Virus record (IMG/VR): IMGVR_UViG_3300035182_002586
Coordinates: 124,001-188,000 of that record
Length of the DNA stretch: 64,000 bases
Reading direction: 5' to 3' (one strand)
The notes below the pieces were generated by a model, which searched no databases, was not told the origin of the DNA, and worked only from the letters and a program-made list of their open reading frames with translations. Both the position numbers and the translations under genes were made by a program. Shown one piece after another: positions 19,032 to 37,887 of the stretch (position 1 is its first letter; every line of letters begins with the position of its first letter).

Positions 19032-19032
19032 A

Positions 19033-19106: not shown

Positions 19107-19114
19107 CTACGTTT

Positions 19115-19434: not shown

Positions 19435-19508
19435 AGTCTACTGTGTGAGTAGGATCGCAGCCGCAACCAGCAGGAAGAGCGCCGCTGTGATGTAGTACGG
19501 GTTGTCCA

Positions 19509-20126
19509 TCACGCCTTCGCCTTCGCCTTCTTGGCGGTGACCTTCGGGGGCTTGACGGCGATGGTCGTGTCCGTCTCGAAGCGCGGTACACCGATCTGGT
19601 CGATGATCCCGTGCCTCTTGGCCTCGCGAGCGTTCATGAACCAGTTCACGTTCTTGCGCTTGTCCAGCTCCTTGCGGAAGTAGCCCTTGGTCTTGCCGCA
19701 GTTGTCGTCGAGGCGGGCGAAGCACTTGTCGTCGTCGTTCAGGTCACTGGTGAGCGCCGCGGAGTTCTCCCGGAGCTTGTCCGTTGGGATCGACGAGATG
19801 GACTCGTGTACCATGATCTTCGCCCCGGGGGCTGCCCACCGCATCCCCTTGGTGCCGGATGCGAGCAGGTCGGCTCCCGCAGAGAGGGCCTGGCCCAAGC
19901 AGATGGTGGCGACCTTGATGTCGCTCTCCTCTGCCGACCTAATGAGATCCTGCATCGCGAGCAGGTGGGCCACGGAGCCCCCCTCACTCATGATGTACAG
20001 GGGGAGGACGCCCTGGGCCTCTTCGAGACAACGCTCGATGCGACGATGAAGCCGTCGCACCGTGTCATCGTCGAACTCGTAGACCCAGACGTCGAGCAGC
20101 TTGGGCGACCACGCGGGGGCTTTCAT
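19509..20126 (-). CDS. clpP: ClpP-like protease proteolytic subunit
   Basis: YIMSEGGSV, GQALSAG (catalytic Ser), IMVHE (His), WFMNAREAKRHGIIDQI. Confidence 0.85.
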   Translation of the reverse strand: MKAPAWSPKLLDVWVYEFDDDTVRRLHRRIERCLEEAQGVLPLYIMSEGGSVAHLLAMQDLIRSAEESDIKVATICLGQALSAGADLLASGTKGMRWAAPGAKIMVHESISSIPTDKLRENSAALTSDLNDDDKCFARLDDNCGKTKGYFRKELDKRKNVNWFMNAREAKRHGIIDQIGVPRFETDTTIAVKPPKVTAKKAKAKA

Positions 20127-20152
20127 GGGCGTCCTCCCATCCTCCAAGAGGG

Positions 20153-21400
20153 TTAGCGAGAACGCTTGCGGGCGCCGCCGCTGATCGGGATCTCCTCGCG
20201 GGTCTCCTCGATCATGCGGGGCTTCTCGACCTCGAAGTACGAGCGCTTCTCCAGGTTGAACGACCGGAGGGTGCCGTCCGAGGTCAGGTCCCACGAAAGA
20301 ATGAGGCCGCCGATGGCCGGCGCGCCACCGAGGCTCTTGGAGAACGCAGATCCTCCGCCCTGGAAGGTCGGGCACGCGATGCCGTGCACTGCACGCTCTT
20401 CGACGTAACAGAACACGTGCCAGTGACCGCAGAGGAGGATGTTGGGCTTCTCCCCCGAGCTGTACTTCTCGATGTGCTTCTGGATGGCGTACGACCGTGC
20501 GTAGCTCACGCCCGAGCGCGGGTGCCAGAGGTGGACGACCGCGCCGCGGATCTTGAGGAAGGCGCCACGGTTGCCGTAGAAGTGCAGGTCCTTGCGGCCG
20601 CGCTCCTCGAAGTAGTTCGAGAGGTACTGGCCGACGTCGACCCCGACCTGCTCCGTGAAGGTGAAGTCGTGGTTGCCCGTGATGGCGTGGTAGTGGAGCC
20701 CCGGGAGCTGCGGCAGCGTCTCGAAGAGGTCCCGAGCCTGCTCGTCGAGGCCGCTGTGAGAGACCTCCCACATGCCGTGCCGGTAGCAACCGTCGATCAC
20801 GTCGCCAGGGTGAAGGATCTCGCGAACGCCCTGCGAGTAGGCGTAGTGGATGAACTCCTTGAGCTGCTCACGCAGGCAGTACTTGCTCCCAAGGTGCGTG
20901 TCCGAGATGACCGCCACCTTCTGACGTTCGCCCACGACCGGGGGGACGCCGATGGACTGGAGCCGATCGTCCGGTTCGGGGAACCTGATGCCCACGTGGT
21001 TGTGCTCGACGTGGACCTTCACCCCGAGCTTGAGTGCGTCGTCGATGACCTTCTGTGCCTTGCTCGGAGGGAGATCGAGCTTGTCGCACAGGTTGTGGAA
21101 GTTGATCGGGCCCTTCTTGGCGATGCGGATGAACTCCGCGAGCAGAGGGGACGGCTGGAGGATCGACTCGGAAGCACCCTCGTCTTCACCCTCGTTCGAT
21201 GTGTCGACCGTCGGCGGACGCATGTGGCTCGTCGGCGGGCCGAGGCTCTCACGAAGGAAGACCGAGCGCAGGGCCGCCTCGGTGACTTCTCGGCCGACAC
21301 GGTTGGAGATCTCCTCGACCGCCTTCCGGTACTCGTTCTTCGAGAACTGGCGCAGGACCGCTTTCGCCGCCGCAAGCTGCTTCTTCGTCCACATCGACAT
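20153..21400 (-). CDS. calcineurin-like metallophosphoesterase with N-terminal HTH-like region
   Basis: SDTH, GDVIDG, GNHD, HP and GHWH motifs. Confidence 0.88.
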   Translation of the reverse strand: MSMWTKKQLAAAKAVLRQFSKNEYRKAVEEISNRVGREVTEAALRSVFLRESLGPPTSHMRPPTVDTSNEGEDEGASESILQPSPLLAEFIRIAKKGPINFHNLCDKLDLPPSKAQKVIDDALKLGVKVHVEHNHVGIRFPEPDDRLQSIGVPPVVGERQKVAVISDTHLGSKYCLREQLKEFIHYAYSQGVREILHPGDVIDGCYRHGMWEVSHSGLDEQARDLFETLPQLPGLHYHAITGNHDFTFTEQVGVDVGQYLSNYFEERGRKDLHFYGNRGAFLKIRGAVVHLWHPRSGVSYARSYAIQKHIEKYSSGEKPNILLCGHWHVFCYVEERAVHGIACPTFQGGGSAFSKSLGGAPAIGGLILSWDLTSDGTLRSFNLEKRSYFEVEKPRMIEETREEIPISGGARKRSR

Positions 21401-21967
21401 TACAGACCTCGCCCTACGCCGACACCTGTTCAGGGTGCTTGGCTAGAAAGGTGTTCCGATCCGGTCTGATTCGATCTGGGTTCGGCCTAACGAAACAACG
21501 CACCTAGGATCAATGCGACAATGAGGACTAGGCCGAGCAGTGCCTTCTCGATTTCGATACGGTCATCTTGGTCTTGGTGTGGTCCCGTCATCGGAGAAGG
21601 CGTCGTAGAGGCTCACGGTGTTGCCTGTTTGCTTCCTGAGGGTTCTACACAAGTGGACCCTCACAGCGGAGCTGCTTGAAGCCTGTGCTTGTGCGATGCG
21701 GTGTGTGCGGTCAGGATGAAATGCAGATCCTCCTTATCGGTCCGCCTAGCGGGCGCGAACCGTCCCACCGTGCGCTGCAACAACTCGGCGAACACCAGGT
21801 TCCCGGCTCTTGTCGACGTGGACGGTGATCTGCGTCTCCGAGAGGAGGCACGCGATCCCCAAATACACGACGACCTCACGCAGACAAGCGCGTGCGGACG
21901 CTTCGTCGGGGAAGTCGAGTTCGAGTGTGCGGCTCCCCATAACTTGGGGGGAGCACAAGATGAATTC

Positions 21968-22041
21968 ACGGTTCCAGCACGATGGTCGTGCGCGCGGTTG
22001 AAGTCCGCGAGGTGAGGTTTCGATTACCTCCCGGATCACCA
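21968..22041 (+). pseudogene. tRNA-Phe(GAA)-like with unpaired 5' acceptor strand
   Basis: D, anticodon (ttgaagt) and T arms plus CCA present; 5' strand does not pair with ccggatc. Confidence 0.6.
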
Positions 22042-22043
22042 AC

Positions 22044-22119
22044 CCCCTCGTCCTGACGGATAACAGGCGCAGCCCTCCGAAGGCTGACGTTGCAGGTTCG
22101 ACTCCTGCCGAGGGGACCA
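22044..22119 (+). tRNA. tRNA-Arg(CCG)
   Basis: ctccgaa loop, CCA. Confidence 0.85.
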
Positions 22120-22125
22120 CAGTAC

Positions 22126-22198
22126 GCAGAGTGAGCAAGCCTGGTGGTTGCATCGGTCTGAAAAGCCGACCAACTTGGTTCGATCCCAAGACTCTGCA
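22126..22198 (+). tRNA. tRNA-Phe(GAA)
   Basis: ctgaaaa loop. Confidence 0.87.
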
Positions 22199-22223
22199 CC
22201 GACGGCCGTGAGACCGTCTTCAT

Positions 22224-22298
22224 CAGGGTGTGGCTCAGCCTGGCTAGAGCGCCTGTCTGGGGGACAGGAGACCGCGGGTTCGAATCCCGCCACCCTGA
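22224..22298 (+). tRNA. tRNA-Pro(GGG)
   Basis: ctggggg loop. Confidence 0.9.
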
Positions 22299-22305
22299 CT
22301 ACTTT

Positions 22306-22378
22306 GCCTCGTGAGGCTGCTGGGGAGGCCAGGTGATTGTCGATCACCCGCTGGCGGGTTCGATTCCCGTACGAGGCG
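22306..22378 (+). tRNA. tRNA-Asp(GTC)
   Basis: ttgtcga loop, G73. Confidence 0.85.
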
Positions 22379-22385
22379 CTGAGAA

Positions 22386-22460
22386 CGGAGTGTCGCCTAG
22401 CCTGGTAGGGCACCTGCTTCGGGAGCAGGCACAACGCCGGTTCGAATCCGGCCACTCCGA
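22386..22460 (+). tRNA. tRNA-Pro(CGG)
   Basis: ttcggga loop. Confidence 0.9.
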
Positions 22461-22464
22461 CCGC

Positions 22465-22535
22465 GACGCGAACTGACGGGTTCAGCGGTCGGTCTGCAAA
22501 ACCGACTTGCGAGGGTTCGAGTCCCTCTCGCGTCT
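22465..22535 (+). tRNA. tRNA-Cys(GCA)
   Basis: ctgcaaa loop, U73. Confidence 0.85.
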
Positions 22536-22571
22536 CCGGATTGCAATCTCTACTTATTGCAATCCCCTAGC

Positions 22572-23000
22572 ATGACGAAGGTGTGCGTCTCCTGTGCGGA
22601 AAGCAAACCCCTCTCTTGTTTCAACAGGAAGGGAGCGAAGTACTACAACTCCCGCTGTAAAGATTGTCAGAAGGTGTACTGGCAGTCCTACTACGCCGAC
22701 CCACAGAAACGGGCCAGGCACATAGAGACTAGTAAGACACATGCTAAAGCCCGAAGAGAGCGGCTAAAACAGCTAATCAGAGAGGGGAAAGACAAACCGT
22801 GTGCGGATTGTGGGGTAACCTACCCTTACTGGGTGATGCAGTTTGATCACCTGCCTGAGCACACGAAAACGAAACAACTTTCACTCATGCATGGTGGGTC
22901 CGAAGAGGACATCTTGAGAGAGATGTCTAAGTGTGCGGTGGTCTGCGCCAACTGTCACTGTGAGAGGACACACAAGAGGCGGTCCTTGCGACGAGGGTAG
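22572..23000 (+). CDS. HNH endonuclease with N-terminal zinc finger
   Basis: CVSC..CKDC; CADCG...MQFDH...KCAVVCANCH. Confidence 0.9.
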   Translation: MTKVCVSCAESKPLSCFNRKGAKYYNSRCKDCQKVYWQSYYADPQKRARHIETSKTHAKARRERLKQLIREGKDKPCADCGVTYPYWVMQFDHLPEHTKTKQLSLMHGGSEEDILREMSKCAVVCANCHCERTHKRRSLRRG

Positions 23001-23020
23001 CTACGGCCCCTCCAACCCAT

Positions 23021-23095
23021 GCGGGTGTCCGATCGGTAATCGGCGCTTCCTTGCCAAGGAAGATGTGTGGGGTCCGACTCCCCTCACCCGCTCCA
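23021..23095 (+). tRNA. tRNA-Gly(GCC)
   Basis: ttgccaa loop, TCCA. Confidence 0.82.
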
Positions 23096-23096
23096 T

Positions 23097-23185
23097 GCGT
23101 CCGGATGCCTCGAAAGGCGCGGGGGAGGCTGTGCGTAGCAGCACTACGACCCCCCGAGGAGCGGGTTTGACTCCCGCCTGGACGC
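23097..23185 (+). tRNA. tRNA-like element (His- or Arg-like) with an insertion in the anticodon loop
   Basis: gcgtccgg/ctggacgc acceptor, T arm, ~25-nt anticodon loop. Confidence 0.55.
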
Positions 23186-23232
23186 AGGTGTTCACGATGG
23201 ATCGACCCAAGCCTCACTGTGTACAGGGGGGC

Positions 23233-23729
23233 ATGGGAAGAGACTCTGAGGAGAACAAGGGCCGGAACTACCTGGCCAAGACGTTCCAAGCGATCTTCGT
23301 CATCGCCATCGTCAGGTGGGTCTGGCCGTGGGCACTTCCGTACGAGGTCTTCTCGTTCTGGAGCTTCAAGACGCCGCTCATCGACGGGATCCTTGCAGCG
23401 TGGCCCTGCCTCGCGTGGGCGGTCGTCATCCAGACGCTCCTGGAGCTACTGCGGGGCCAGGGCTCGCTCTTCGAACGCTTCTACCGCCCCTCGGGCCACG
23501 AGATCCTGGTCAAGGGGTTCTGGATCAGCCTGTGGGCGGGCATCTCCGAGGAGATCTGCTTCCGCTGACTCCTCTTCCTCGAAGCCATCATCAGCGTGAA
23601 GGTCGCCAACTTCCTGCTCTTCGACTGGTTGGGGTGGGGCTTCTTCCGCTGGCTTCAGACTGGCTGCACGGACACTTCCTGGTCGAAGATCGCAAGGTCT
23701 TCGAGTACACACGGAAGCTGGCGAAGTAG
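23233..23729 (+). pseudogene. CPBP/Abi-type intramembrane metalloprotease pseudogene
   Basis: TM segments, AGISEEICFR, in-frame TGA at 23566, then apparent frameshift or truncation. Confidence 0.65.
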
Positions 23730-23732
23730 GGT

Positions 23733-24212
23733 CTACAGCTTGTCGGCCTTGTCGATCACGTCCGACCACTTGGGCGGGGGGGCGGCCGTCAGAGTCGGGG
23801 CCGGAACCGCGCTGACCGTGGGGGCAGGCTGGAGCTTCTTGATCGCGACCTTGTGCGTCAAGGGTGACGCGGGTGACGCCGACAGCTTCGGGGCAACGGA
23901 CACAGAGACCGAAGACGCCGGCACGGGGCAGGCGATGGGCTCCTCGACATCGACAACCCCATCGCCGTCACGGTCACGAGCGGCTGCGATGTCGGACCGG
24001 AGCGCGAGAAGCTGCACGTGAAGGGAGGCTTGGTCCTTCTGGAGGTCGGTGATCGACTTGGAGAGCGCTTCGTAGCTCGCCTGTTCGAGCCTCTTGTCGA
24101 GCGCCTTCACGAGCGACGTCGCCGCCGTGACCAGGGCCGTGATGGCCATGACGAGCGAGATGAGCGGTCGCATGCTGGAGAACAGGGAGGGCTTCGTCGT
24201 CGGTTCCGCCAT
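23733..24212 (-). CDS. membrane-anchored coiled-coil protein
   Basis: N-terminal TM segment, coiled coil, DRDGDG, Pro/Ala-rich tail. Confidence 0.65.
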   Translation of the reverse strand: MAEPTTKPSLFSSMRPLISLVMAITALVTAATSLVKALDKRLEQASYEALSKSITDLQKDQASLHVQLLALRSDIAAARDRDGDGVVDVEEPIACPVPASSVSVSVAPKLSASPASPLTHKVAIKKLQPAPTVSAVPAPTLTAAPPPKWSDVIDKADKL

Positions 24213-24245
24213 GTTCTCCAACGGGGCGTAGAAGAAGATTCACCG

Positions 24246-24740
24246 CTACGGGCGGTACGTACCGAACACCCGGTCCCACCCGAACCAGATGATGCCCATG
24301 TTCTTGCGCATGTCCCCGGCATGGTGGATGAAGTGCAGGGCACGGAGACGCTGGAACCAGCGGTAGCGGAGCAGCCAGTGGCACTGGATGTGCGACGCGA
24401 TGTGGATCCAGTCATGCAGGGCGCCTACGAGGATTGCCTCAACCAGGATGACCGGGAAGACGATCCAGGGTACGCCGAGCTGCCACAGCAAGGCGCCATA
24501 CAGCAGGAAGAAGAGGGTGATCGGCGGGATGAAGATGATGGTCGTGTCATCCTTCCCGGCCCACCGGTACTTCTCCGAGAGCAGGTCGTTGGGCGGGTAC
24601 TGCTTGAGGTGGTGATTCATGTGCGAGCGGTAGAGCCGCCCGGCCCACCGCTGATGGACGACCCAATGGGCGACCCACCCTGCAAGCGTGCCGTACAGGA
24701 ACGTACCAAGGATGGCGAGAAGGACTGCAACAACCACCAT
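24246..24740 (-). CDS. fatty-acid hydroxylase / sterol desaturase family protein
   Basis: HWVVH, HMNHH, HDWIH and HFIHH His boxes with TM segments. Confidence 0.85.
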   Translation of the reverse strand: MVVVAVLLAILGTFLYGTLAGWVAHWVVHQRWAGRLYRSHMNHHLKQYPPNDLLSEKYRWAGKDDTTIIFIPPITLFFLLYGALLWQLGVPWIVFPVILVEAILVGALHDWIHIASHIQCHWLLRYRWFQRLRALHFIHHAGDMRKNMGIIWFGWDRVFGTYRP

Positions 24741-24784
24741 GCCCAAGGAGGTCGAAAAGAGCTTCCTTGGGTCGACTGAAACAC

Positions 24785-24856
24785 GCGGGTGATGCCGACT
24801 GGTAAGGCCCCTCGTTGCCAACGAGGTTCATGTGGGTTCGATTCCCATCACCCGCT
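24785..24856 (+). tRNA. tRNA-Gly(GCC)
   Basis: ttgccaa loop, U73. Confidence 0.88.
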
Positions 24857-24884
24857 CTAGTCCTCTTGTCCGTCGGCGCACAGT

Positions 24885-25289
24885 ATGCCGACCGCAGCTA
24901 CCACCTACGAGTATTCCGCTACCGTGTCCCGTGTCGTCGACGGGGACACGGTGCACATGGCCCTCACGAAGAACTTCTCCCTCAACATCGACTTCGGGTT
25001 CTTCATCAAGGACACGGTGGTGCTCCAGAAGTCCGCCGACCTGGACTTCCGGCTCGCGGGGATCAACGCCCCGGAGATGCACGGGGCCACGGCCGCTGCG
25101 GGTCTCGCAGCGAAGAACGAGCTGACCCGTCTCCTCGGCCTCGGGCCGCTGCGGGTCGTTACCGGGAAGGCCGACAAGTACGGCCGGTGGCTCGCGACCA
25201 TCTACGTCACCGTCGCGGACGGGACGGAGCTGTGCGTCAACGATGCCATGATCAAGGGCGGGTTCGCTCAGCCCTACATGACAGCTTGA
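24885..25289 (+). CDS. thermonuclease (SNase) family protein
   Basis: RVVDGDT, RLAGINAPE, DKYGRWLA. Confidence 0.9.
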   Translation: MPTAATTYEYSATVSRVVDGDTVHMALTKNFSLNIDFGFFIKDTVVLQKSADLDFRLAGINAPEMHGATAAAGLAAKNELTRLLGLGPLRVVTGKADKYGRWLATIYVTVADGTELCVNDAMIKGGFAQPYMTA

Positions 25290-25307
25290 GGGCTCCGGGC
25301 CCTCCAT

Positions 25308-25381
25308 CCCCTCGTAGCCTAGTGGAACGAGGCACCCGCCTTCGAAGCGGTTCAACGCTGGTTCGATTCCAGCCGAGGGGA
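25308..25381 (+). tRNA. tRNA-Arg(TCG)
   Basis: cttcgaa loop. Confidence 0.87.
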
Positions 25382-25413
25382 CCGGGCTCTGTTCCTCACG
25401 GGACACCCCTTAT

Positions 25414-25490
25414 CTGGGTGTGGCTCAACCTGGTAGAGCACTCGCTTCGGGAGCGAGGGATTGTGGGTTCAAATCCCGCCACCCAGACCA
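25414..25490 (+). tRNA. tRNA-Pro(CGG)
   Basis: ttcggga loop, CCA. Confidence 0.9.
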
Positions 25491-25548
25491 TAAGCACAGC
25501 GGTGATTATCACCGGCCATCACTGATTATCAGTGATGGGATTGATAAC

Positions 25549-25619
25549 GGGGTCATCGTCTAAAGGGAAGACACTAGCCTTGCAAGCTGGGAATGGGGGT
25601 TCGATTCCCCCTGACTCCA
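25549..25619 (+). tRNA. tRNA-Ala(TGC)
   Basis: G3:U70, cttgcaa loop. Confidence 0.88.
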
Positions 25620-25627
25620 CTACGTTC

Positions 25628-25700
25628 GCCGTTGAGGCTCCTTAGGAGGGGCGCGACCATGGTAAGGTCGACTCAGTGGGTTCGAATCCCATCAACGGCT
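25628..25700 (+). tRNA. tRNA-Thr(GGT)
   Basis: atggtaa loop. Confidence 0.85.
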
Positions 25701-25724
25701 CTAGGCGTCCCTCGACGCCTTCAT

Positions 25725-25809
25725 GGAAGGGGAACCGGCAAGGCGTCGGACTCGCTTGGAAAGCGATGTGGTCGCGCAAGCGGCTGGGATTCGAGTTCTC
25801 CCTCTTCCG
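25725..25809 (+). tRNA. tRNA-Ser(GGA), 8/4 fold
   Basis: 8-bp acceptor ggaagggg/cctcttcc, 4-bp T stem, long variable arm. Confidence 0.8.
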
Positions 25810-25822
25810 CCGTGGAAACTTT

Positions 25823-25907
25823 GGAGAGTGAACCAGTCGGTGGGACTGGCCCCGGTTGCTACCCGGTGGGTACCGCAAGGTATGGTGATCGTGCCGCCCT
25901 CTCTCCG
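25823..25907 (+). tRNA. tRNA-Ser(GCT), 8/4 fold
   Basis: ggagagtg/ctctctcc acceptor, T arm ggtg-atcgtgc-cgcc. Confidence 0.75.
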
Positions 25908-25934
25908 CTACTCCTTTGATACCTACAGGGTTCT

Positions 25935-26456
25935 GTGAAGACCTGTACAAAATGCGGGGACTCTAAATCTCCTACCATGTTCTACGCGCGGCGCGCCTCT
26001 TGTAAGGAGTGCGACAAGGCCGCTTCCAGAGAACGCTCGAAGTCAGGTCCTCCTAGAACTCGGTCTGCACAAACCAAAGAGAAGAGTAACTGTCGTCTTA
26101 AGCAACGGCGACGCGATCCCAAAGAACGTGCCACTTTCATCTTGAAGGATACTCGTTCTGCCGATCGTCGCAAGGGACTGGAGAACGACCTGACTCGATC
26201 GTTCATCGAGTCAGCGATCTCAAGTGGGTGTGTATACTGCGGTGAGAACGAGCTGAAGATGACTCTCGATCGGATTGACAACACAATCGGACACGTTCAA
26301 ACGAACGTGGTCGCTGCGTGCGTCCGGTGTAACTACATGCGACGAGACATGCCTTACGCAGCGTGGACCCGACTCGTCCCGCTCATCAAACAGCTCCGAG
26401 AAGAGGGGTTGTTTGGCGCTTGGGTGTGCGACTGCGTGACGCGCGGTGGTGTATGA
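25935..26456 (+). CDS. HNH-type endonuclease
   Basis: CTKC..CKEC; CVYCG...LDRIDN..GH...NVV.AC..CN; paralog of the 31950 gene. Confidence 0.88.
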   Translation: MKTCTKCGDSKSPTMFYARRASCKECDKAASRERSKSGPPRTRSAQTKEKSNCRLKQRRRDPKERATFILKDTRSADRRKGLENDLTRSFIESAISSGCVYCGENELKMTLDRIDNTIGHVQTNVVAACVRCNYMRRDMPYAAWTRLVPLIKQLREEGLFGAWVCDCVTRGGV

Positions 26457-26468
26457 ACAGGTAACGTT

Positions 26469-26556
26469 GGAAGCGTGGCCGAGTGGTTCATGGCTTCGGT
26501 TTTGAAAACCGACGACGGTAACACGTCCGGGGGTTCGAATCCCTCCGCTTCCGCCA
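26469..26556 (+). tRNA. tRNA-Ser(TGA)
   Basis: Canonical class II tRNA, GCCA. Confidence 0.92.
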
Positions 26557-26569
26557 GGTAGACGACAAC

Positions 26570-26643
26570 GCGAGGTGACGGCTTGGAGCCTGGTCTCTCT
26601 CACACGGAGACCGTACGGGGTTCGATCCCCCGACCTCGCACCA
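26570..26643 (+). tRNA. tRNA-Val(CAC)
   Basis: ctcacac loop, CCA; paralog of the 18576 tRNA. Confidence 0.83.
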
Positions 26644-26644
26644 T

Positions 26645-26727
26645 GGAAGGTGACGCCTCAGTGGTGGGGCACCGGCTTCGAACACCGGAGGTCTGAAAGG
26701 GCAGTGGTTCGACTCCACCTCCTTCCA
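26645..26727 (+). tRNA. tRNA-Ser(CGA), 8/4 fold
   Basis: ggaaggtg/ctccttcc acceptor, 4-bp T stem gtgg/ccac. Confidence 0.78.
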
Positions 26728-26807
26728 CTACGACCCCATTTTCATCTTGGGGTCTCTCTCGCCGGTGTACACAGTACCGGCCGACACGACGCAGTGGACC
26801 CCCAACA

Positions 26808-26847
26808 GGCACCCCCCTCGGACGCGCAAGCGCCCATCCAAGGTGCC
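26808..26847 (+). promoter_or_regulatory. 5'-leader copy of the ncRNA module (candidate autoregulatory protein-binding site)
   Basis: ggcacc-ccCTCGGA-cgc-GCAA-gcg-CCCATCCaa-ggtgcc, ending 7 nt before ATG 26855. Confidence 0.75.
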
Positions 26848-26854
26848 GGGACGA

Positions 26855-28873
26855 ATGAACATGAACGCGAACAACCCCAACGAGAAGCTCGGTCCCGCCG
26901 AGAGGATCATCCAGACGGTCCTCGCCTACTCCGACCACATGGTCCACAACCGCCCGGGCGTCCTCACGAAGGACCCGGGTTCCGCGATCGGCGTCAAGTG
27001 GACGTACGTGACGCACAAGGTCGAGCCGAAGCCGGGCGCTGCTCCGGTCGCGGCCGCGCCGGCTGCCCCGAGGGTCAAGCGTGAGAAGGGCGCCAAGCGC
27101 GACCCGAACGCGCCCAAGGTCCCGAAGGTCAAGCGTCCGCCGATCCCGGACGGCATCAAGGTCGTCTACCAGCTCACGAAGGCGGGCAAGAAGACCATCC
27201 GCACGCGTCTCGGCGTCCTCCAGGACGACGGCAAGACGGTGAAGGCCGACAACGGCGTCACTATCGGCGAGTACCGTCCGGCGGGGCTCTTCCCGGAGGT
27301 CGCGGCCTGGATGTACAAGCAGGTCGCGGACGTCTGGAAGATCGACAACGAGTTCGCGGCGCGGTGGGCAAGCTACGCGTTCGGCCAGGAGCACCGTGAC
27401 CTCAAGGTCATCCTGGCGGCGTTCATGCTCGTCCAGAGCCGCAAGGGCGATCCGGTCCTCGACGGAGGCAAGGTCGCGTTCCTCGACGAGGACTACCGCG
27501 ACGTGGGTGAGGCGATGATGCTCATCCGCGAGAAGGGGCAGAAGGACCTCAACCCGAAGCTCCTGCTCCGCATCCGTGACCTGCTCACGATCCCGGCCGT
27601 CGCCGAGGTCAACCGCGAGCTGGGTTTCGGCCGCAGCGCCCGCAAGCCGTTCTACGGCCGGTGGGAGAAGGCGGTCGAGAAGTGGCTGCGGCACCGCGAG
27701 GAGAACCCGAAGCTCCTCCAGGGCCTCGTGAAGGCGGGCTTCCGCTCGACCGTCATGGAGCTGGCGTGCGCCATCGGTTACAAGCCGGAGACCCCGAAGT
27801 TCTTCGAGATCCTCCGGTGGAAGCAGGCGCAGGCGAAGGATGGGCGCCGGGCCCTCGACATCGGCAAGGCCGTCACGGCTGCCGAGACGTGGGAGGGGTT
27901 CACCGAGCAGCAGATCTGCGAGACGATCGTTCGTACCAAGCCCAACTACAAGCGCGTCATCGGGCTCATCCCGAAGGCCGTGGGGCTCACGCGGGCCATC
28001 GTCGCGGCGACCATCGAGGCTGGCGGGTTCTCGAACAAGGACCTGATCCAGTTCACGCCGACCCTGGAGGAGCTGGGCCTCCTCAACGTGCAGGACGTGC
28101 GTGAGCGGTGGGAGAAGGCGATGCGCGAGGCCGACGACATGCGTGCAGCGAACATCGCGCTGCGCGTCAAGTCCAAGGCGGTCGCGGAGAAGCTCCAGGA
28201 CGCGGCCGATACCGCCATCAAGGCGGCGGTGGCCGAGGTCGTGAAGGGCCTCCGGATCTACGTCGTCGTCGACCGTTCGGGCTCCATGGATGGTGCGATC
28301 GAGGCGGCCAAGAGCCACATCGGACGCTTCCTCCAGGGCTTCCCGGCAGACAAGCTGCACGTCTCCATCTTCAACACCGTGGGCCGCGAGGTGCAGATCA
28401 AGCACGCCTCGGCTGCGGGCGTCGAGAACGCCTTCCGGGGCATCCAGGCGGAGGGTGGGACGAACCATGCGGATGGCGTCAAGGTGCTCTCGAAGTACAA
28501 GCCGGCCGACGACGAGGACGTGCTGATGATCTTCATCGGCGACGAGGAGGACTCGCACCAGCACTTCGTGCCGACGGTCCAGGCTTCTGGACTCCGGCCG
28601 ATGGCCTTCGGCCTCGTGCGTGTCCTCGGTCGGCAGAGTCACGGGCGTGGCATGGCGGTGCGCAACACCGCGCAACTCCTCGGCATCCCGTGCTTCCAGA
28701 TCGACGAGAAGACGTTTGCGGACCCGTACGCGATCCCGCGCACGATCCGCAACCTCGTCGCGGCGACCCCGGTGGGGGCCGTCACGACCGCTGCTCCGCA
28801 GCGTGTCCGTGAGACCCTCGTGGACACGATCCTCAAGACGGACGTGCTCAAGAAGCCGGCCTGGGCCGCCTAG
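26855..28873 (+). CDS. Ro60-like protein (TROVE-like helical region plus C-terminal vWA)
   Basis: vWA MIDAS motifs DRSGSM, GGT and GDEED are clear; the TROVE-like assignment of the basic helical N-terminal region is inferred from architecture. Confidence 0.75.
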   Translation: MNMNANNPNEKLGPAERIIQTVLAYSDHMVHNRPGVLTKDPGSAIGVKWTYVTHKVEPKPGAAPVAAAPAAPRVKREKGAKRDPNAPKVPKVKRPPIPDGIKVVYQLTKAGKKTIRTRLGVLQDDGKTVKADNGVTIGEYRPAGLFPEVAAWMYKQVADVWKIDNEFAARWASYAFGQEHRDLKVILAAFMLVQSRKGDPVLDGGKVAFLDEDYRDVGEAMMLIREKGQKDLNPKLLLRIRDLLTIPAVAEVNRELGFGRSARKPFYGRWEKAVEKWLRHREENPKLLQGLVKAGFRSTVMELACAIGYKPETPKFFEILRWKQAQAKDGRRALDIGKAVTAAETWEGFTEQQICETIVRTKPNYKRVIGLIPKAVGLTRAIVAATIEAGGFSNKDLIQFTPTLEELGLLNVQDVRERWEKAMREADDMRAANIALRVKSKAVAEKLQDAADTAIKAAVAEVVKGLRIYVVVDRSGSMDGAIEAAKSHIGRFLQGFPADKLHVSIFNTVGREVQIKHASAAGVENAFRGIQAEGGTNHADGVKVLSKYKPADDEDVLMIFIGDEEDSHQHFVPTVQASGLRPMAFGLVRVLGRQSHGRGMAVRNTAQLLGIPCFQIDEKTFADPYAIPRTIRNLVAATPVGAVTTAAPQRVRETLVDTILKTDVLKKPAWAA

Positions 28874-28890: not shown

Positions 28891-29211
28891 ATGGCGCCCA
28901 CCATGCCCGATGATCCCCACATCTCGTTCTCGTTCGTGAGAATCGACGAAGACCTCGTTCGTCGCGTGGCCGAGCGCTGCGGGGCGAACGAGGCCGACGT
29001 TTGGGCCTACCTCAGGTCCGAATTTCAGCAGGACGACACGCTCCTGCACGCCTTCGAGTACTTCGGGGTCTTCCCCACGGGGAAGCACTACTACGAGCCG
29101 GGGAAACCCCGCCCCGATGATCCGCTTTCGCTGTCGTCGATGGGCTGCCGTGTCGTACACGCGGGCTACCCCAACAGCCTCGACTGCCGGCACACGAAAC
29201 CCACGAGGTAG
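28891..29211 (+). CDS. hypothetical protein
   Basis: ORF preceded by GGTGTA. Confidence 0.55.
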   Translation: MAPTMPDDPHISFSFVRIDEDLVRRVAERCGANEADVWAYLRSEFQQDDTLLHAFEYFGVFPTGKHYYEPGKPRPDDPLSLSSMGCRVVHAGYPNSLDCRHTKPTR

Positions 29212-29215: not shown

Positions 29216-30214
29216 ATGAGCTGGAAGGACTTGCTACAGACGGAGGGTGAGACCGTCATCGCCCCTTGGGTCGAGGGCAAAGTTCTTCGCTCGGTCGATC
29301 GCACGTGGATGATCGAGGGGCGCCGTCCCCCGGAGCCCGGTTGGCACCGCTTCACCATCACGGCCCGCAAGGCCCGGTGGGAGAAGGCGGTCGACCCGCA
29401 GCCGGAGCTGCTCGTCGATGTCCAGCGTGGCTACCTGGTCGGTGACCGCCTCGTCCGGAACGACGCTCGTGTGGACCCGGACCCCGCGCTCATCACCGAG
29501 CAGTCGGAGCCCATCCATCTCGTCGAGCCCGGACTCGACCGCTTCGTACCCATCATCGCGGGCCGTGGCTTCGAGGACGGGCCCCTGATCTACCAGGGCC
29601 AGGACATGCCCTCGGGCCCCGAGGAGAGCGTCCTCCAGGCGTTCCTGGAGCGCCACATCAGCGTCAACGGCATTCCCGGCGTCACCCCCGCCCTCGACGC
29701 GGCTTTCCGCATGGAGAGCTGGCAGAGGTTGGAGGCCGACCGTCGAAGGGCTGAGATCGAGCGTCGACTCCGCGAGGAGGAAGAGAAGCGGCAGCGCGAA
29801 GAGCGCCGGCAGCAGCTCGTCCAGCAGCTCGGGGACGGTGCGGGACGCCGCCAAATGGCTCTCGTCGACTTCGCGGCCGCTGCTACGGCAGCTCTCGCGG
29901 TTGGAGGCGCGACGTACCTCGACCACCGGCGCTCTGCCGTCCGGGGGGAGATGGTGGTTCGGTTCCGGGTTCAGAACCGGAGCTTCGAGTGCACCTGCGA
30001 GGAGAAGACGCTCGCCATCGTCGACGCGGGTATCTGCCTCATCAACCACAACACCGGCGAGAAGGGCGACACCTACTTCACGCTGGAGTCGCTGCCTGCT
30101 GTCATCGCTGAGGCGGTCCGCAAGCACAAGCTCGTCGTCTTCCGTCATGTCGGGGGTGGTGATCAGCACCACGACGACCACGACGATCGGGATGACGAAG
30201 ACGAGTTCGACTGA
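29216..30214 (+). CDS. coiled-coil protein with a possible E2 (UBC)-like C-terminal domain
   Basis: DAGICL...FTLESLPAVIAEA resembles the E2 GxICL active-site segment; lies within the E1/Ubl/JAB cluster. Confidence 0.55.
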   Translation: MSWKDLLQTEGETVIAPWVEGKVLRSVDRTWMIEGRRPPEPGWHRFTITARKARWEKAVDPQPELLVDVQRGYLVGDRLVRNDARVDPDPALITEQSEPIHLVEPGLDRFVPIIAGRGFEDGPLIYQGQDMPSGPEESVLQAFLERHISVNGIPGVTPALDAAFRMESWQRLEADRRRAEIERRLREEEEKRQREERRQQLVQQLGDGAGRRQMALVDFAAAATAALAVGGATYLDHRRSAVRGEMVVRFRVQNRSFECTCEEKTLAIVDAGICLINHNTGEKGDTYFTLESLPAVIAEAVRKHKLVVFRHVGGGDQHHDDHDDRDDEDEFD

Positions 30215-30240: not shown

Positions 30241-30648
30241 ATGATGGAAGCAGGCGTCGTCGTCGACATCCACGGAGAGGCCCTCCACTGGCACTTGCCG
30301 GAGGGTCGATCCGGGGGGTCGCTCCCGGACCACGTGGCCAAGCTCCCCGCGTCCGAGGAAGCGTTCCGCAAGGCGAACCTCTGGTACGTCTTCTGGGACA
30401 ACCGGGACAGCATCAAGGGGTTCGCCCACAGCCATCCCGGCGGTGGGGTCCCGGGCCCCTCGTACACGGACGTGACGACCTTCGCCGCTATCGAGGATGC
30501 CCTCGGGCAGCGCCTCGACTGGTGGATCACGAGCGACCAGGCGGTCGTCGTGTGCAGGTGGGCGGGCCCTCATCGGCTCACCTACCAGGTGGAGCGCCTC
30601 GCGGAAGACCCCTCGTGGGTTGCCGAGCTGAGACGCCTCAGCAAGTGA
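30241..30648 (+). CDS. JAB/MPN+ metalloprotease
   Basis: N-terminal E, then GFAHSHPGGGVPGPSYTD (HxH-x7-S-x2-D). Confidence 0.88.
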   Translation: MMEAGVVVDIHGEALHWHLPEGRSGGSLPDHVAKLPASEEAFRKANLWYVFWDNRDSIKGFAHSHPGGGVPGPSYTDVTTFAAIEDALGQRLDWWITSDQAVVVCRWAGPHRLTYQVERLAEDPSWVAELRRLSK

Positions 30649-30696: not shown

Positions 30697-30957
30697 ATGA
30701 TCAACGCGAACGAAGCAATGGTGAACGTGACGTGGAACCGGCAGAATGGGAACCTCGTGGACCCGGTGCCGCTCGACTCGGCGGATGGCGACGTCCGCCA
30801 GTGGATCACGGAGGCGGTGCGCGCGGGTAGCGTGCCCGGTATCCCGGCCGACGGGGCTGCGGACTTCCACGACTACGTGATCGACCGGTTCGCGCCGACC
30901 GACGCGCGCCCGTACAACCTCATCTCGGTCCGCCCGAAGACCCCCTTCGGCGCGTGA
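30697..30957 (+). CDS. ubiquitin-like (beta-grasp) protein
   Basis: 86 aa, beta-beta-alpha-beta pattern, C-terminus RPKTPFGA with a penultimate Gly; lies between JAB and E1. Confidence 0.7.
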   Translation: MINANEAMVNVTWNRQNGNLVDPVPLDSADGDVRQWITEAVRAGSVPGIPADGAADFHDYVIDRFAPTDARPYNLISVRPKTPFGA

Positions 30958-30969: not shown

Positions 30970-31311
30970 ATGCTCAACGAGAACGTGCATGAGCCTCCGC
31001 TCCACGTCCGGCACGCGACCTTGGAGCGCCTGTCTTCGGACAGCGAGTTCAAGGTCCACTGCCCTGCGTGTACGGACGGCCTACTCATCGTGAGCCGTAA
31101 CCTCGATCGCGTCATCTCGTCGCTGGATCGCTGCATCTCTTGTGGGCAGGTCATCGTCTACGAAGACGAGACGATCGCGCACGAGAAGGTGCGTCGAATG
31201 CCCGAAGAGGCTGTGCGGGAGTACGCCGAGGGGTACGCAAAGGTCCTCGAAGGGAAGGCCCCCAAGAAGACCTCCCTGTGGGACCGTCTGCTGGGAGACG
31301 AAGACCTCTAG
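30970..31311 (+). CDS. zinc-ribbon protein
   Basis: CPAC...CISC; ggagg RBS. Confidence 0.65.
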   Translation: MLNENVHEPPLHVRHATLERLSSDSEFKVHCPACTDGLLIVSRNLDRVISSLDRCISCGQVIVYEDETIAHEKVRRMPEEAVREYAEGYAKVLEGKAPKKTSLWDRLLGDEDL

Positions 31312-31328: not shown

Positions 31329-31904
31329 ATGAAGAACATCGTCGTCATCGGCGTCGGAGCCCTCGGGTCTCACGTCGTCCAGTTCCTCCGCAGCGCGGGC
31401 GCGACGATCAAGGTCATCGACTTCGATCGCGTCGAGCAGAAAAACGTCCTCTCGCAGTTCCACGGCAAGCCGAACGTCGGCAAGTCCAAGGTCATGGCCC
31501 TCCAGCAGACGATGCAGTTCCTCTGGGGGGTGAAGATCGAGGTCGTGCCGCACAAGCTCGTCACCGACAACGCCGAGAACGTCATCGGCAAGCCGGACCT
31601 CATCATTGACTGCCTCGACAACGGGGCCGCCCGCCGCGTCGTGCAGACGTACGCTCGGGCCAAGAACATCCCGTGTCTCCACGGGGCGCTCGCGGCCGAC
31701 GGTGGCTTCGCCCGCGTCGTGTGGGACGAGAAGTTCGTCATCGACGACGAGGGCACCGGAGCCGGCGCGACCTGCGAGGACGGCGAGCATCTCCCCTTCA
31801 TCAGCCTCGCGTCCGCGCACATCGCGCGCGCCGCACAGTCCTTCCTCAAGGACGGCAAGAAGGGCGGCTTCGAAATCAACCCCGGCGGTTCGACCGGGAC
31901 TTGA
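31329..31904 (+). CDS. ThiF/E1-like adenylyltransferase
   Basis: GVGALGS, IDFDRVEQKN, GKSK, DCLDN, candidate catalytic Cys in ATCED. Confidence 0.9.
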   Translation: MKNIVVIGVGALGSHVVQFLRSAGATIKVIDFDRVEQKNVLSQFHGKPNVGKSKVMALQQTMQFLWGVKIEVVPHKLVTDNAENVIGKPDLIIDCLDNGAARRVVQTYARAKNIPCLHGALAADGGFARVVWDEKFVIDDEGTGAGATCEDGEHLPFISLASAHIARAAQSFLKDGKKGGFEINPGGSTGT

Positions 31905-31949: not shown

Positions 31950-32459
31950 ATGCTGCGAACTTGTACGAAGTGTCTGGGTTCGAAGCCTGAGAAGTCTTTC
32001 GCAAAGACCTCCTCTGGGTACCGTCGTAGGGTCTGCCACACGTGCCAGAGCCGCGTAAAACGTGGTCAAGCCGATCCGACTCTTCGACGGGACTACCAAC
32101 GCAAACACCGCGAAGAGAACCCCCACATCTACGTCCTTGTTGATTGTCGGATGTCCGATCGTCGCAACAAGAGAACGGGTAACGACCTAGACACACTCTT
32201 CGTTGAGGCAGCCCTCAGCAACGGGTGTCAGTACTGTGGGGATACATCGCTCCGTATGACCCTGGACCGTATCGACAACACTCGTGCCCACGCGAAAGAC
32301 AACGTGGTTCCGTGTTGCCTCCGGTGTAACTACATCCGTGGGTCGATGCCCTACGAAGCCTGGCTTCATATGGTCCCAACGGTACGCGAGGCGAGAGAAC
32401 AGGGACTCTTTGGGGACTGGCGCTCGCAGCCTCTCAACAAGAGGCCGAAAGACCCTTGA
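31950..32459 (+). CDS. HNH-type endonuclease
   Basis: CQYCG...LDRIDN..AH...NVVPCC..CN; paralog of the 25935 gene. Confidence 0.88.
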   Translation: MLRTCTKCLGSKPEKSFAKTSSGYRRRVCHTCQSRVKRGQADPTLRRDYQRKHREENPHIYVLVDCRMSDRRNKRTGNDLDTLFVEAALSNGCQYCGDTSLRMTLDRIDNTRAHAKDNVVPCCLRCNYIRGSMPYEAWLHMVPTVREAREQGLFGDWRSQPLNKRPKDP

Positions 32460-35594: not shown

Positions 35595-35681
35595 GTGTAC
35601 GTTGCGCGTCATGGGCGCAGACAACGGGACACCAAGCACACGGGTCGAAGCACTCATCAACGCCTGTTGGTGCCCCCGCTG

Positions 35682-36389
35682 ATGGCCATCCTCCCCCTCG
35701 ACACCGCAGAGTGGCCGTCGCGTCGCTACAAGGTCGTCTATGCAGATCCTTGTTGGAAGTACTACGGGGACCCTGATAAGGACCAGGCGGCGGGCAAACA
35801 CTACAACGGCATGACCCTCGATGAACTGTCAGCTCTTCCGGTGGGCCGCCTCTTGGCGCCTCCCGCTGTGGTCTTCATGTGGACCACCTCGCCCAAGTTG
35901 AGTGAGAGTCTCGACCTCATCAAGAGGTGGGGGCTGCACTACATCGGCGTCGCCTTCGTGTGGGTCAAGACCACCAACGATGGACGCGTCATCCACGGGC
36001 AAGGGGTCCGCCCTTCCATCACGAAGTCCACGACGGAGTACGTGCTGGCCGCCTCCACGGTGAAGCAAGGGCGCCCTCTGCCGCTCCTCACGGAAGCGCA
36101 GCCACAGGTCATCCTCGCGCCTCGCCCCGGCGGGCTGCACTCCAGCAAGCCTGTGGAGGTCCGAGAGGGCATCGAGGCTCTCTACGGGCCCATGCCGAGG
36201 GTCGAGTTGTTCTGCCGTGGTGAGCCCGCCCCCGGGTGGGACGGGTGGGGTAACGAAGCTGGAGACCTGACGGTCCAGCCGGAGCTGGCGCAGTCTCCCG
36301 CCTTGCGAGAGAAGCTCGTGAAGCAAGCCGAGGAGGGATCGATGCGAGAGGTATTCGACCTCGCGATGTCCCTCGACGACGAAGAGTAG
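35682..36389 (+). CDS. MT-A70 family adenine methyltransferase
   Basis: VVYADPCW (DPPW variant), FMWTT, FVWVK, HSSKP, VELFCR...GWDGWGNE. Confidence 0.88.
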   Translation: MAILPLDTAEWPSRRYKVVYADPCWKYYGDPDKDQAAGKHYNGMTLDELSALPVGRLLAPPAVVFMWTTSPKLSESLDLIKRWGLHYIGVAFVWVKTTNDGRVIHGQGVRPSITKSTTEYVLAASTVKQGRPLPLLTEAQPQVILAPRPGGLHSSKPVEVREGIEALYGPMPRVELFCRGEPAPGWDGWGNEAGDLTVQPELAQSPALREKLVKQAEEGSMREVFDLAMSLDDEE

Positions 36390-36409: not shown

Positions 36410-37264
36410 ATGGCCAGATCTCCGATGGGAGCCGCAAAGGATGCGGCGAGAGAAGCTCGTGCGCGCACGAAGCTCCGGAAAGAGGTCCGGGAAGAGCTGT
36501 ACGAAGAGATCGAGGCGAAGGTCCGCGTCGAGGTGCGAGAGCAGCTCGAACGAGAAGTGCGGGACGAGATCGCCACCAAGATCCGGGACGAGCAGGCGTC
36601 GGGCCCCGTGGTTCAGGCTCACCTGGACAACGCCAACGAGCTGCTCCAGGGGATCCAGCTCGACGCAGAGGCGCACGTGGTGGCGTCCACGCGAGAGGCT
36701 CAGGCCCTCGTGGTCCCTCTGCGATCGTCGAAGCGGGTGCGGAACTTCCTGGAGGTGTTCCTCTACCTGACGGGGATCCCGCTCTCCATCACCCTTCTCG
36801 TGGTCCTGCATACGGGCTTCCTGAGCATCGCTTTCCTCGTCCCCATGGTCATCTGGTACTACGGGGTGCAGGCTGTCTCGGAGTCGAACGAGAAGCACTT
36901 TGCAGCCATGCAGCAGGACATCGAGCACGCAGAGGAGGTAGCTCGAAGCTACCGAGCCCTCTCGAATCGCGCGGCTGCGATCCGGGCCGAGTTGCCGAGC
37001 CTTCCGAACACGGCGCGGCTCAAAGCGCGGCTGCGAACGGTGACCTCTGAGAGGGCGAGGATCACGCAGTGGGCGAACGCAGGTCTTCGTGGGCTCGACC
37101 AAGCCAGGTCCGAGGTGCGGGATCGGATGCTCGGGGAGGCCGACCTAGACCGCATCCTGGCCATCCCCACGGACCACCGGCAGCGTGTAGCCCCTCTCCC
37201 CAACTACGACGAGCAGGCTGAGGCGGAAGCCGAAGTGGAAGAGGCCCTACGAGGGCGCGCATGA
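36410..37264 (+). CDS. coiled-coil membrane protein (2 TM)
   Basis: ORF preceded by GGTGTA; two hydrophobic segments. Confidence 0.7.
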   Translation: MARSPMGAAKDAAREARARTKLRKEVREELYEEIEAKVRVEVREQLEREVRDEIATKIRDEQASGPVVQAHLDNANELLQGIQLDAEAHVVASTREAQALVVPLRSSKRVRNFLEVFLYLTGIPLSITLLVVLHTGFLSIAFLVPMVIWYYGVQAVSESNEKHFAAMQQDIEHAEEVARSYRALSNRAAAIRAELPSLPNTARLKARLRTVTSERARITQWANAGLRGLDQARSEVRDRMLGEADLDRILAIPTDHRQRVAPLPNYDEQAEAEAEVEEALRGRA

Positions 37265-37887
37265 AGGACTTCCCGACCATCCCCACCGTGAGGGAGTTCC
37301 TCCCAAGCGACCTCACCTGGCACGTCTTCGACAAGATCGACGGCTCGAACATCCGCGCCGAGTGGAACCGCAAGCAGGGCTTCTACAAGTTCGGTTCCCG
37401 CAAGCAGCTCCTCGCAACGGACTCGGGGCTCCTCAACGAGTCCCGCGAGCTGGTGCTCAACAAGTACGGCGACCCTCTCTCGGCCATCTTCCGCGCACAG
37501 AGGTACGAGAGTGCGGTCGCGTTCTTCGAGTTCTACGGCCCGAGTTCGGCGTTCGGGGCGCACGTCATGGACGAACCCCACAAGGTGACCCTGATCGACG
37601 TGAGCCCGTACAAGCGGGGCATCCTCCCGCCCACGGAGTTCCTCCGTCACTACGGCCACCTTGAAGTACCGGCGCTCATCCACCAAGGCCCCATCGACGA
37701 GGAGTTCGTCGAGAACGTCCACGAGGGGCGCCTGGAGGGGGTGACGGACGAAGGGGTGATCTGCAAGGCCAAGGCTGACCGGAAGACCGAGGTTCCCGTC
37801 ATGTGCAAGATCAAGAGCCGTGTGTGGCTCGACCGGTTGCGCACCTACTGCAAGGACGACCAGGCCCTCTTCGATCGCCTCAAGTAG
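37261..37887 (+). CDS. ATP-dependent RNA ligase-like nucleotidyltransferase
   Basis: DKIDGSN (KxDG), FGSR, FEFYG, EGVICK and KIK motifs; no OB domain. Confidence 0.8.
   Translation: MKDFPTIPTVREFLPSDLTWHVFDKIDGSNIRAEWNRKQGFYKFGSRKQLLATDSGLLNESRELVLNKYGDPLSAIFRAQRYESAVAFFEFYGPSSAFGAHVMDEPHKVTLIDVSPYKRGILPPTEFLRHYGHLEVPALIHQGPIDEEFVENVHEGRLEGVTDEGVICKAKADRKTEVPVMCKIKSRVWLDRLRTYCKDDQALFDRLK

Follow-up and report, generated by a model that had tools for sequence, protein, structure and literature searches.

The question raised by this locus is what a protein, here called P1, does beside the genes of a ubiquitin-like protein (Ubl), of a Ubl-activating enzyme (E1) and of a JAB protease, and whether it takes the place of a Ubl-conjugating enzyme (E2). 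The P1 gene lies in a window of 64,000 nucleotides (the whole stretch of DNA analyzed), which corresponds to bases 124001-188000 of the 528,957-bp IMG/VR virus record IMGVR_UViG_3300035182_002586; this complete record is referred to below as the 529-kb genome, and its source is a huge phage. A first-pass annotation had read P1 as a possible, highly divergent E2. P1 is a protein with one invariant Cys in a G-x-C-L loop, a motif that is conserved far beyond chance, and we tentatively rank first the reading that it is a non-canonical, E2-analogous thioester carrier or ligase within a conserved Ubl module. The genes of the module and the open reading frames (ORFs) lying between them are the following:

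26747..28873, + strand: von Willebrand factor A (vWA) protein, 708 amino acids (aa) from the first TTG; Pfam VWA_2, E-value 1.4e-7
28891..29211, + strand: 106-aa ORF between the vWA gene and P1; GC content at third codon positions (GC3) 0.85, coding-like
29216..30214, + strand: P1, 332 aa, stop-free ORF and focus of this study
30241..30648, + strand: JAB/MPN+ (JAMM) metalloprotease, 135 aa; weak Prok-JAB match
30697..30957, + strand: Ubl precursor, 86 aa, ending in RPKTPFG-A; predicted mature C-terminus at Gly85
30970..31311, + strand: zinc-ribbon-like ORF (CPxC...CxxC), 113 aa, between the Ubl and E1 genes
31329..31904, + strand: minimal E1-like adenylyltransferase (ThiF/MoeB family), 191 aa; Pfam ThiF, E-value 3e-26, with NCBIfam and PADLOC E1 matches

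The P1 ORF is preceded by a GAGG sequence 9 nt 5′ of its ATG, and its GC3 of 0.82 is coding-like for a genome with 63% GC. As homologues begin with the same MxW(K/R)DLLQ sequence, the start was placed at 29216 and not at the upstream ATG 29117. More than 1442 homologues were found at 90% clustering, all of them described as hypothetical and none with a Pfam domain. The family forms 409 clusters at 50% identity, and nearly all the proteins are of about 300-330 aa, with the Cys-loop domain at the C-terminus.

Conservation was scored on 65 diverse members of the family. Gly272 and Cys274 are invariant (65/65), and no other candidate catalytic residue is. Cys259 is present in 61 of the 65 proteins, being otherwise Ser or Thr, while Cys261 and His278 are found in 29 and 33 of them, respectively. 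Other near-invariant residues are R211, R212, D218, E245, R256, D270, D285, the T-L-E-S-L-P stretch and R310. Close homologues had suggested a zinc site or SWIM-type arrangement, CxC...C...H (C259-x-C261...C274...H278), H311 being conserved in them as well; such a site is unlikely because C261 and H278 vary in the diverse set. In the divergent P1 copy of one phage locus (L080) and in the cyanobacterial P1-like proteins described below, only C274 is kept of the candidate zinc ligands. A role as a Cys-His protease is likewise unlikely, since there is no invariant His among the 65 members; no Lys is invariant in the homologue alignments either.

We modeled P1 with AlphaFold2 from an alignment of 42 sequences (mean predicted local distance difference test score, pLDDT, 83). 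The model places two β-barrels in the N-terminal region (about residues 11-137), followed by a single long Arg/Glu-rich helix (residues 158-205), a compact C-terminal domain (residues 205-312; pLDDT 84 when modeled alone) and an acidic tail (residues 313-332). The long helix corresponds to the coiled coil that the first-pass annotation had described, together with an unknown N-terminal domain, as fused to the C-terminal part. The C-terminal domain consists of two helices, a four-stranded meander (strands 233-239, 245-252, 255-262 and 267-270), the IVDAGICL loop (residues 268-275), a short turn and a helix at 293-302. The succession announced in the first-pass annotation, namely strands followed by IVDAGICL and by a helix with the sequence LESLPAVIAEA (residues 290-300), is thus recovered in the model, in which the loop residue that is invariant in the family, C274, lies 4 residues beyond the end of strand 4.

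Two side observations concern individual copies of the gene. In Virus Rctr197k (197-kb partial genome), the sole relative among deposited phages, the P1 homologue (L001, KX853510.1, 6001-6939; 54% identity) is absent from the GenBank annotation; the record has a coding sequence (Rctr197k_234) in its place that runs on the other strand, and the vWA gene appears just as a misc_feature. In the most divergent phage locus (L079, 7911-8795), the P1 frame ends soon after ...DSGICLRAEYHSEE, the remaining domain being out of frame, which may be due to truncation of the gene, to a frameshift or to faulty assembly.

To what extent P1 belongs with its neighbors was assessed by synteny. The proteins of the window were compared by tblastn with 79 related loci, and counts of genes within ±8 kb were made on the 68 non-identical IMG/VR loci. 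All five genes (vWA, P1, JAB, Ubl and E1) are present in 59 of these 68 loci, and their order, vWA, P1, JAB, Ubl, E1, is identical in each of the 59 complete ones. Most contigs with the module are of 100-620 kb. The vWA gene lies immediately 5′ of P1 in 77 of the 79 loci; the tightest pair is JAB-Ubl, with a median gap of 18 nt. Gaps between module genes range from overlap to 5.5 kb and other genes are often inserted, which suggests that accessory or mobile genes have entered repeatedly without loss of the module order. Neither the 106-aa ORF at 28891-29211, for which there is also no family match, nor the 113-aa zinc-ribbon ORF gives a tblastn match in the 79 related loci, and both are thus specific to the present phage.

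The partners of P1 retain the motifs on which their activities depend in known families. For the vWA protein, the start of the gene is uncertain (an alternative ATG at 26855 gives 672 aa). Its C-terminal vWA domain has a complete metal ion-dependent adhesion site (MIDAS), with DxSxS, GGT and GD invariant in 37 homologues; the N-terminal part, of roughly 430 aa, matches nothing, and the PDB profile matches are limited to vWA domains of the BatB type. In the JAB protein, residues E3, H63, H65, S74 and D77 are invariant in 46 homologues, so that the JAMM motif is intact, and weak Rpn11 matches are obtained around the motif. The Ubl family has a conserved RPKTPFG sequence followed by 0-60 variable residues (75 loci), with the stop codon directly after the Gly in many phages; the tails after the conserved Gly are unrelated among phages, some being acidic and some including CxxC. 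Judged by its sequence, this looks like a precursor that is trimmed to a C-terminal glycine. There is no sequence match between the Ubl and solved Ubl structures, and we infer a β-grasp fold for it.

The E1 keeps GxGxxG, D94-C-x-D97-N, R102 and T148-C149 as invariant elements, and its residues 3-173 align with E. coli MoeB (1JW9; E-value 2e-16). Cys149 falls on the Cys of the MoeB ALTC sequence (Cys187 in chain numbering), at the crossover-loop position, and non-Cys residues stand at the positions of the MoeB CYRC zinc motif, CxxC being absent from the protein. The free Cys in ATCED and the missing CxxC motifs, both pointed out in the first-pass annotation, are therefore borne out, and its statement that no sulfur-transfer genes are nearby extends to the whole genome: no rhodanese, PP-loop ATPase or cysteine desulfurase was found in the 529 kb, where control genomes gave matches, host enzymes remaining possible.

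A version of the module also exists outside phages. The best plasmid match of the phage E1 is a 1.2-Mb unannotated replicon of Kovacikia minuta (NZ_CP083583.1), and a second cassette was found on a Nostocales chromosome:

Kovacikia locus (L107), 2661-8570, all genes on one strand: cassette with genes for Ubl, vWA, P1-like and E1 proteins
Nostocales locus (L108), 3757-8494: cassette with genes for Ubl, a small ORF with a CPCGSGR motif, vWA, P1-like and E1 proteins

The Kovacikia Ubl (66 aa) ends in ...IRPEAVYG directly before the stop codon, and hhalign aligns it end to end with the C-terminus of the phage Ubl (E-value 0.0013). The 498-aa vWA protein matches the phage vWA family (hhalign 99%, E-value 3e-18), and the P1-like protein (285 aa, ending ...VVSSGICLSGRDRDFDLQSL...) matches the P1 family over 240 columns (hhalign 96%, E-value 4.6e-9). 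The E1 gene (212 aa; hmmsearch E-value 2.5e-37) starts 4 nt after the stop codon of the P1-like gene. The same locus encodes a CCA-adding/poly(A)-polymerase-type (PolyA_pol) nucleotidyltransferase and an uncharacterized 290-aa protein. In the Nostocales cassette, the Ubl is also of 66 aa and ends in AVYG, and the P1-like and E1 genes are 21 nt apart. The family of P1-like proteins comprises 1736 members; of the top 120 listed, which are 75-89% identical to the Kovacikia protein, all those that bear a name are cyanobacterial. On one Cyanothece contig the P1-like gene lies apart from any E1. Taking into account that the cyanobacterial cassettes carry Ubl, vWA, P1 and E1, and that JAB accompanies the phage Ubls, many of which are tailed, these four genes make up the evolutionary core of the module.

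CxxC tails follow the conserved Gly in the Ubl precursors of four phage loci (L048, L054, L055 and L065), the present window having the separate zinc-ribbon ORF instead. Together with the SEC-C-like CPCGSGR ORF of the cyanobacteria, these tails and the ORF at 30970-31311 may, to go by their sequence patterns, represent a recurring zinc-binding accessory.

P1 homologues were also observed on contigs of species-representative metagenome-assembled genomes (MAGs) of GTDB (L083-L098), mostly binned as Myxococcota (Polyangiaceae, Sandaracinaceae, "Deltaproteobacteria"); one of these contigs is of 1.03 Mb. The binning hints at a possible host range, or at integrated copies of huge phages.

Is P1, then, an E2? 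No family match for P1 was obtained in Pfam, PHROG, NCBIfam or PADLOC, the E1-E2 models of the latter included. Several results weigh against an E2-like role. The Pfam E2 models (UQ_con, Prok-E2_A to E) matched none of 42 P1 C-terminal domains, even at E-values up to 10. For a profile comparison, the Prok-E2_D family was represented by 7 PRTRC protein B sequences from plasmid PRTRC cassettes; protein B corresponds to Prok-E2_D (E-value 7e-64) and adjoins Prok_Ub, Prok-JAB and ThiF genes. With two P1 alignments, hhalign gave probabilities of 0.4% and 0.3% against Prok-E2_D, the sole E2 family compared by profile. Prok-E2_D keeps PxxN-x7-C (N148...C156) and a downstream His; in P1 no HPN or PxxN is found about 8 residues before C274, the sequence L-x-I-[IV]-D-[AS]-G-I having neither Asn nor His-Pro. 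The Cys stands just 4 residues past strand 4, and position -8 from it is not occupied by an Asn as in HPN. A phosphate- or RNA-binding site would also be in keeping with the cluster of conserved Arg residues (R211, R212, R256 and R310). Conjugation of archaeal SAMP and Thermus TtuB proceeds without any E2, which is therefore not obligatory. Lastly, no JAB was detected by hidden Markov models (HMMs) in the Kovacikia locus, nor among the called genes of the Nostocales locus.

Structure-based searches added little. The Atlas fold search with P1 returned DsbC_N-like rows only, the BFVD fold search returned nothing, and nothing was found with ESM Atlas feature searches; the Atlas's own model of P1 is poor (pLDDT 0.48). 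A prediction of the complex of E1, Ubl and the P1 C-terminal domain run without controls, scored 0.00 and counts neither for nor against. Some weak, isolated matches were judged spurious: EACC1 over the P1 coiled coil (E-value 0.088), PADLOC RmrT (E-value 0.0026), enterotoxin B and designed "Pizza" propellers, and P0247, a 2168-aa Ig-repeat protein with 13 weak stretches. As to a separate E2, UQ_con and Prok-E2_A, B, D and E gave no match in the 529-kb genome (Prok-E2_C was not searched for). A scan for further E2 families to set against P1 by profile, made with Prok-E2_B and Cap2 models on 301 genomes from the phylum to which one MAG belongs, found nothing.

An E2-like role is nevertheless the most economical reading of P1. 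It is favored because of the Ubl/E1/JAB setting, the invariant Cys of the GxC(L) motif and the lack of a recognizable E2 or sulfur-relay gene in the genome, and the E2-analogous carrier is ranked first because P1 is the sole member of the module with an unexplained invariant nucleophile and has kept its place beside the E1 from Myxococcota-linked phages to two cyanobacterial loci. Of the proposal of a divergent E2, what stands is the membership in a Ubl/E1/JAB system, the GxC(L) Cys as the only invariant candidate nucleophile and the absence of a canonical E2 from the genome; the UBC (ubiquitin-conjugating) fold is not supported, since E2 HMMs, hhalign and the search for HPN were negative.

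From what is observed (gene set and order, the motifs of E1, JAB and vWA, the precursor-like end of the Ubl and the single invariant Cys of P1) we infer the chemistry of the module throughout. The JAB protease would first cut the variable tail of the Ubl, leaving Gly85 of RPKTPFG free. The 191-aa E1 would then adenylate this glycine and hold the Ubl as a thioester on Cys149, from which it would move to Cys274 in the G-I-C-L loop of P1. In the choice of the target, P1 might take part with its barrels and long helix and the vWA protein with its MIDAS site, and the JAB protease could also undo the conjugation. A broader version of this proposal, possible yet on the whole unlikely, is that the P1 C-terminal domain represents a new, non-UBC class of Ubl-conjugating enzymes (a convergent "E2") which, assisted by a minimal E1 and by vWA/MIDAS as specificity factor, is used by huge phages during infection to tag host or phage proteins, a chromosomal version being kept by filamentous cyanobacteria. 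Translation components would be possible targets, given the island of genes for tRNAs, an aminoacyl-tRNA synthetase and transfer-messenger RNA (tmRNA) in which the module is embedded.

This island is one of translation and RNA genes. The window has 54 tRNA genes, located at 14785-26728 with others scattered to 52528, and a tmRNA gene at 51160-51517; some of the tRNAs (Asn, Thr, Met) were called at 82-83 nt, which is unusually long. IMG/VR lists the record as a provirus (CheckV completeness 100), and the contig on which it lies is of 620,031 bp. Further genes of the window are:

6560-7474: adenosine deaminase
9556-11406, - strand: arginyl-tRNA synthetase (ArgRS)
25935..26456, + strand: HNH/endonuclease VII-like gene (PHROG 1035, E-value 1e-20), flanking the module
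31950..32459, + strand: second HNH/endonuclease VII-like gene (PHROG 1035, E-value 2e-19), directly 3′ of the E1 gene
35595-36389: MT-A70 methylase
37261-37887: RNA-ligase-like gene
40549-41583 and 46867-47607: two ATP-grasp genes
57278-58579, - strand: DDE transposase with an N-terminal SWIM zinc finger, inside the phage genome

The two HNH/endonuclease VII-like genes are paralogues and bracket the module on both sides.

Among the alternatives, the one that survives best, although we consider it unlikely, is a conjugation without E2 as in archaeal SAMP/UbaA or Thermus TtuB/TtuC, in which the E1 would hand the Ubl to its targets and P1, together with the vWA protein, would be an adaptor, a regulator or the main substrate, its Cys being structural or redox-active. 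The lack of a match between P1 and any E2 family or fold, an E1 that is closest to MoeB, ThiF and Uba4, and the large non-catalytic portions of P1 (barrels and long helix) all agree with it, as does the finding that vWA and P1 are neighbors in the loci about as often as the E1 is a neighbor. A G-x-C that is strictly invariant and lies in a predicted exposed loop with no partner Cys or His would, however, be unusual for a purely structural residue, and the lack of an invariant Lys argues against P1 as a fixed acceptor. The distances of just 4 nt (Kovacikia) and 21 nt (Nostocales) between the P1-like and E1 genes also speak against this alternative.

A sulfur-carrier system, in which the E1 would make a Ubl thiocarboxylate and Cys274 of P1 would be a persulfide relay or acceptor, possibly for RNA or tRNA modification, appears to us less probable still. 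The greatest similarity of the E1 is to MoeB and ThiF; its Cys149 lines up with Cys187 of MoeB, a position that we take to correspond to ThiF Cys184. The barrels of P1 are OB/S1-like (resembling oligonucleotide/oligosaccharide-binding folds) and come with the conserved Arg cluster, the module lies among 54 tRNA genes, ArgRS, RNA ligase and tmRNA, and the Kovacikia cassette has its CCA-adding/poly(A) polymerase-type enzyme. Sets of JAB, Ubl and E1 that lack an E2 are, moreover, known from sulfur-carrier systems (Iyer et al., 2006; PMC1779556). The relay partners are nevertheless missing: no gene for a rhodanese, a cysteine desulfurase or a PP-loop ATPase was found in the 529-kb genome or in the cyanobacterial cassettes. 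Where ThiS, MoaD and TtuB typically have a terminal GG, the Ubl has FG or YG, and the known sulfur relays leave no role for the vWA protein with its invariant MIDAS.

A sub-case of the E2-like reading, to which we give about as little weight as to the sulfur carrier, takes the P1 C-terminal domain as genuinely belonging to the UBC/E2 superfamily but having diverged extremely far. Its resemblance to an E2 lies in the invariant Cys of the loop, in the G-x-[IV]-C-L signature and in the order α-β4-loop-α, and in the AlphaFold2 model this order, with the Cys in the loop, is the same as in E2 cores. Such a predicted succession would agree with a UBC-like core, yet it is too generic to count as evidence. 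As two defining features came out negative, membership in the UBC superfamily is not established, and P1 is not demonstrably a UBC protein.

Very improbable, in turn, is a separate RNA- or protein-binding complex of P1 and vWA, such as a Ro-like particle, whose genes would be no more than companions of those for Ubl, E1 and JAB: the vWA protein was considered as a Ro60/TROVE homologue, and no TROVE match was obtained in 37 members at E-values up to 1 or in the PDB profile search, and the genes have stayed co-linear with those of E1 and Ubl both in phages whose hosts are probably Myxococcota and in the two cyanobacterial loci.

To our knowledge, every bacterial Ubl conjugation system characterized to date (type II CBASS, Bil and Bub) is a host defense built on recognizable E1 and E2 folds. 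The module described here is carried by viruses, in dozens of huge-phage lineages with genomes of up to about 620 kb, and cyanobacteria keep a conserved version of it on the chromosome. Where an E2 would be expected stands P1, which neither E2 models nor fold searches recognize and which always comes with a vWA/MIDAS protein. Formation of a thioester by P1 would make it a new enzyme class in Ubl chemistry and provide a handle on host modification by megaphages. If it forms none, the module would be a small system for conjugation or carriage that works without E2 and has two obligatory partners still to be explained.

Bil (BilA, Ubl; BilB, E2; BilC, JAB-type deubiquitinase; BilD, E1) and type II CBASS (cyclic oligonucleotide-based antiphage signaling system; Cap2/Cap3) are host anti-phage defenses with recognizable UBC-fold E2 proteins or domains. 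They share with the phage module a short operon in which a Ubl (or a Ubl-like C-terminus) is encoded together with a minimal bacterial E1 that has a catalytic Cys, with a JAB peptidase and with one additional Cys protein. The PADLOC Cap2 "E1-E2" models match the phage E1 (E-value 1e-16) in the E1 part only, and Cap2 chains of the PDB match it as well. The differences are that P1 matches no UBC-fold E2, that these defenses have no vWA protein and that the present module is carried by huge phages and by cyanobacteria. By their parts list, the operons of the PRTRC cassette and Iyer-Burroughs-Aravind classes 6b-6d are among the nearest systems (Iyer et al., 2006; PMC1779556). They combine the same kinds of components in one operon (Prok_Ub, Prok-E2_D, Prok-JAB, ThiF and an α-helical protein), and the cassette was verified on an Aromatoleum plasmid, its ThiF model matching the phage E1 with an E-value of 4e-10; protein B is a clear Prok-E2_D, whereas P1 is not, and PRTRC has no vWA protein.

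The phage E1 is most similar to the E1s of MoeB/MoaD, ThiF/ThiS, Uba4/Urm1 and archaeal UbaA/SAMP, and trimming of a Ubl precursor by JAB is known in sulfur-carrier pathways (PMC1779556). The phage module differs from these systems in an E1 with no CxxC zinc site or rhodanese domain, in the FG/YG end of its Ubl and in the lack of sulfur-relay partners, with vWA and P1 as additional conserved components. Genetic coupling of vWA to Ubl, E1 and JAB is known from those FtsH-ternary vWA-MoxR conflict systems in which a Ubl tri-ligase set is embedded; these include MoxR and FtsH ATPases, a canonical E2 fused to Ubl, a RING-type ligase (E3) and caspase-like effectors, none of which is seen in the phage module (Kaur et al., 2020; PMC7159879). 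In the literature searched, including the jumbo-phage survey of Iyer et al. (2021; PMC7824862), we found no description of the five-gene phage module or of the cyanobacterial cassette; as this coverage is incomplete, we call them undescribed provisionally.

By analogy only, the UFM1 system may also be compared: its E1 is likewise minimal and of homodimeric type, and UBA5 chains match the phage E1 (E-value 6e-10). UFM1 has a single terminal Gly that becomes free once a short tail is cut off, and its E2 (UFC1) lacks HPN. UFC1 is still a clear UBC fold, and it shows no homology signal to P1. Compared with all these systems, the phage module is a Ubl-E1 system in which the carrier slot is held by a non-UBC-looking protein with an obligatory vWA partner.

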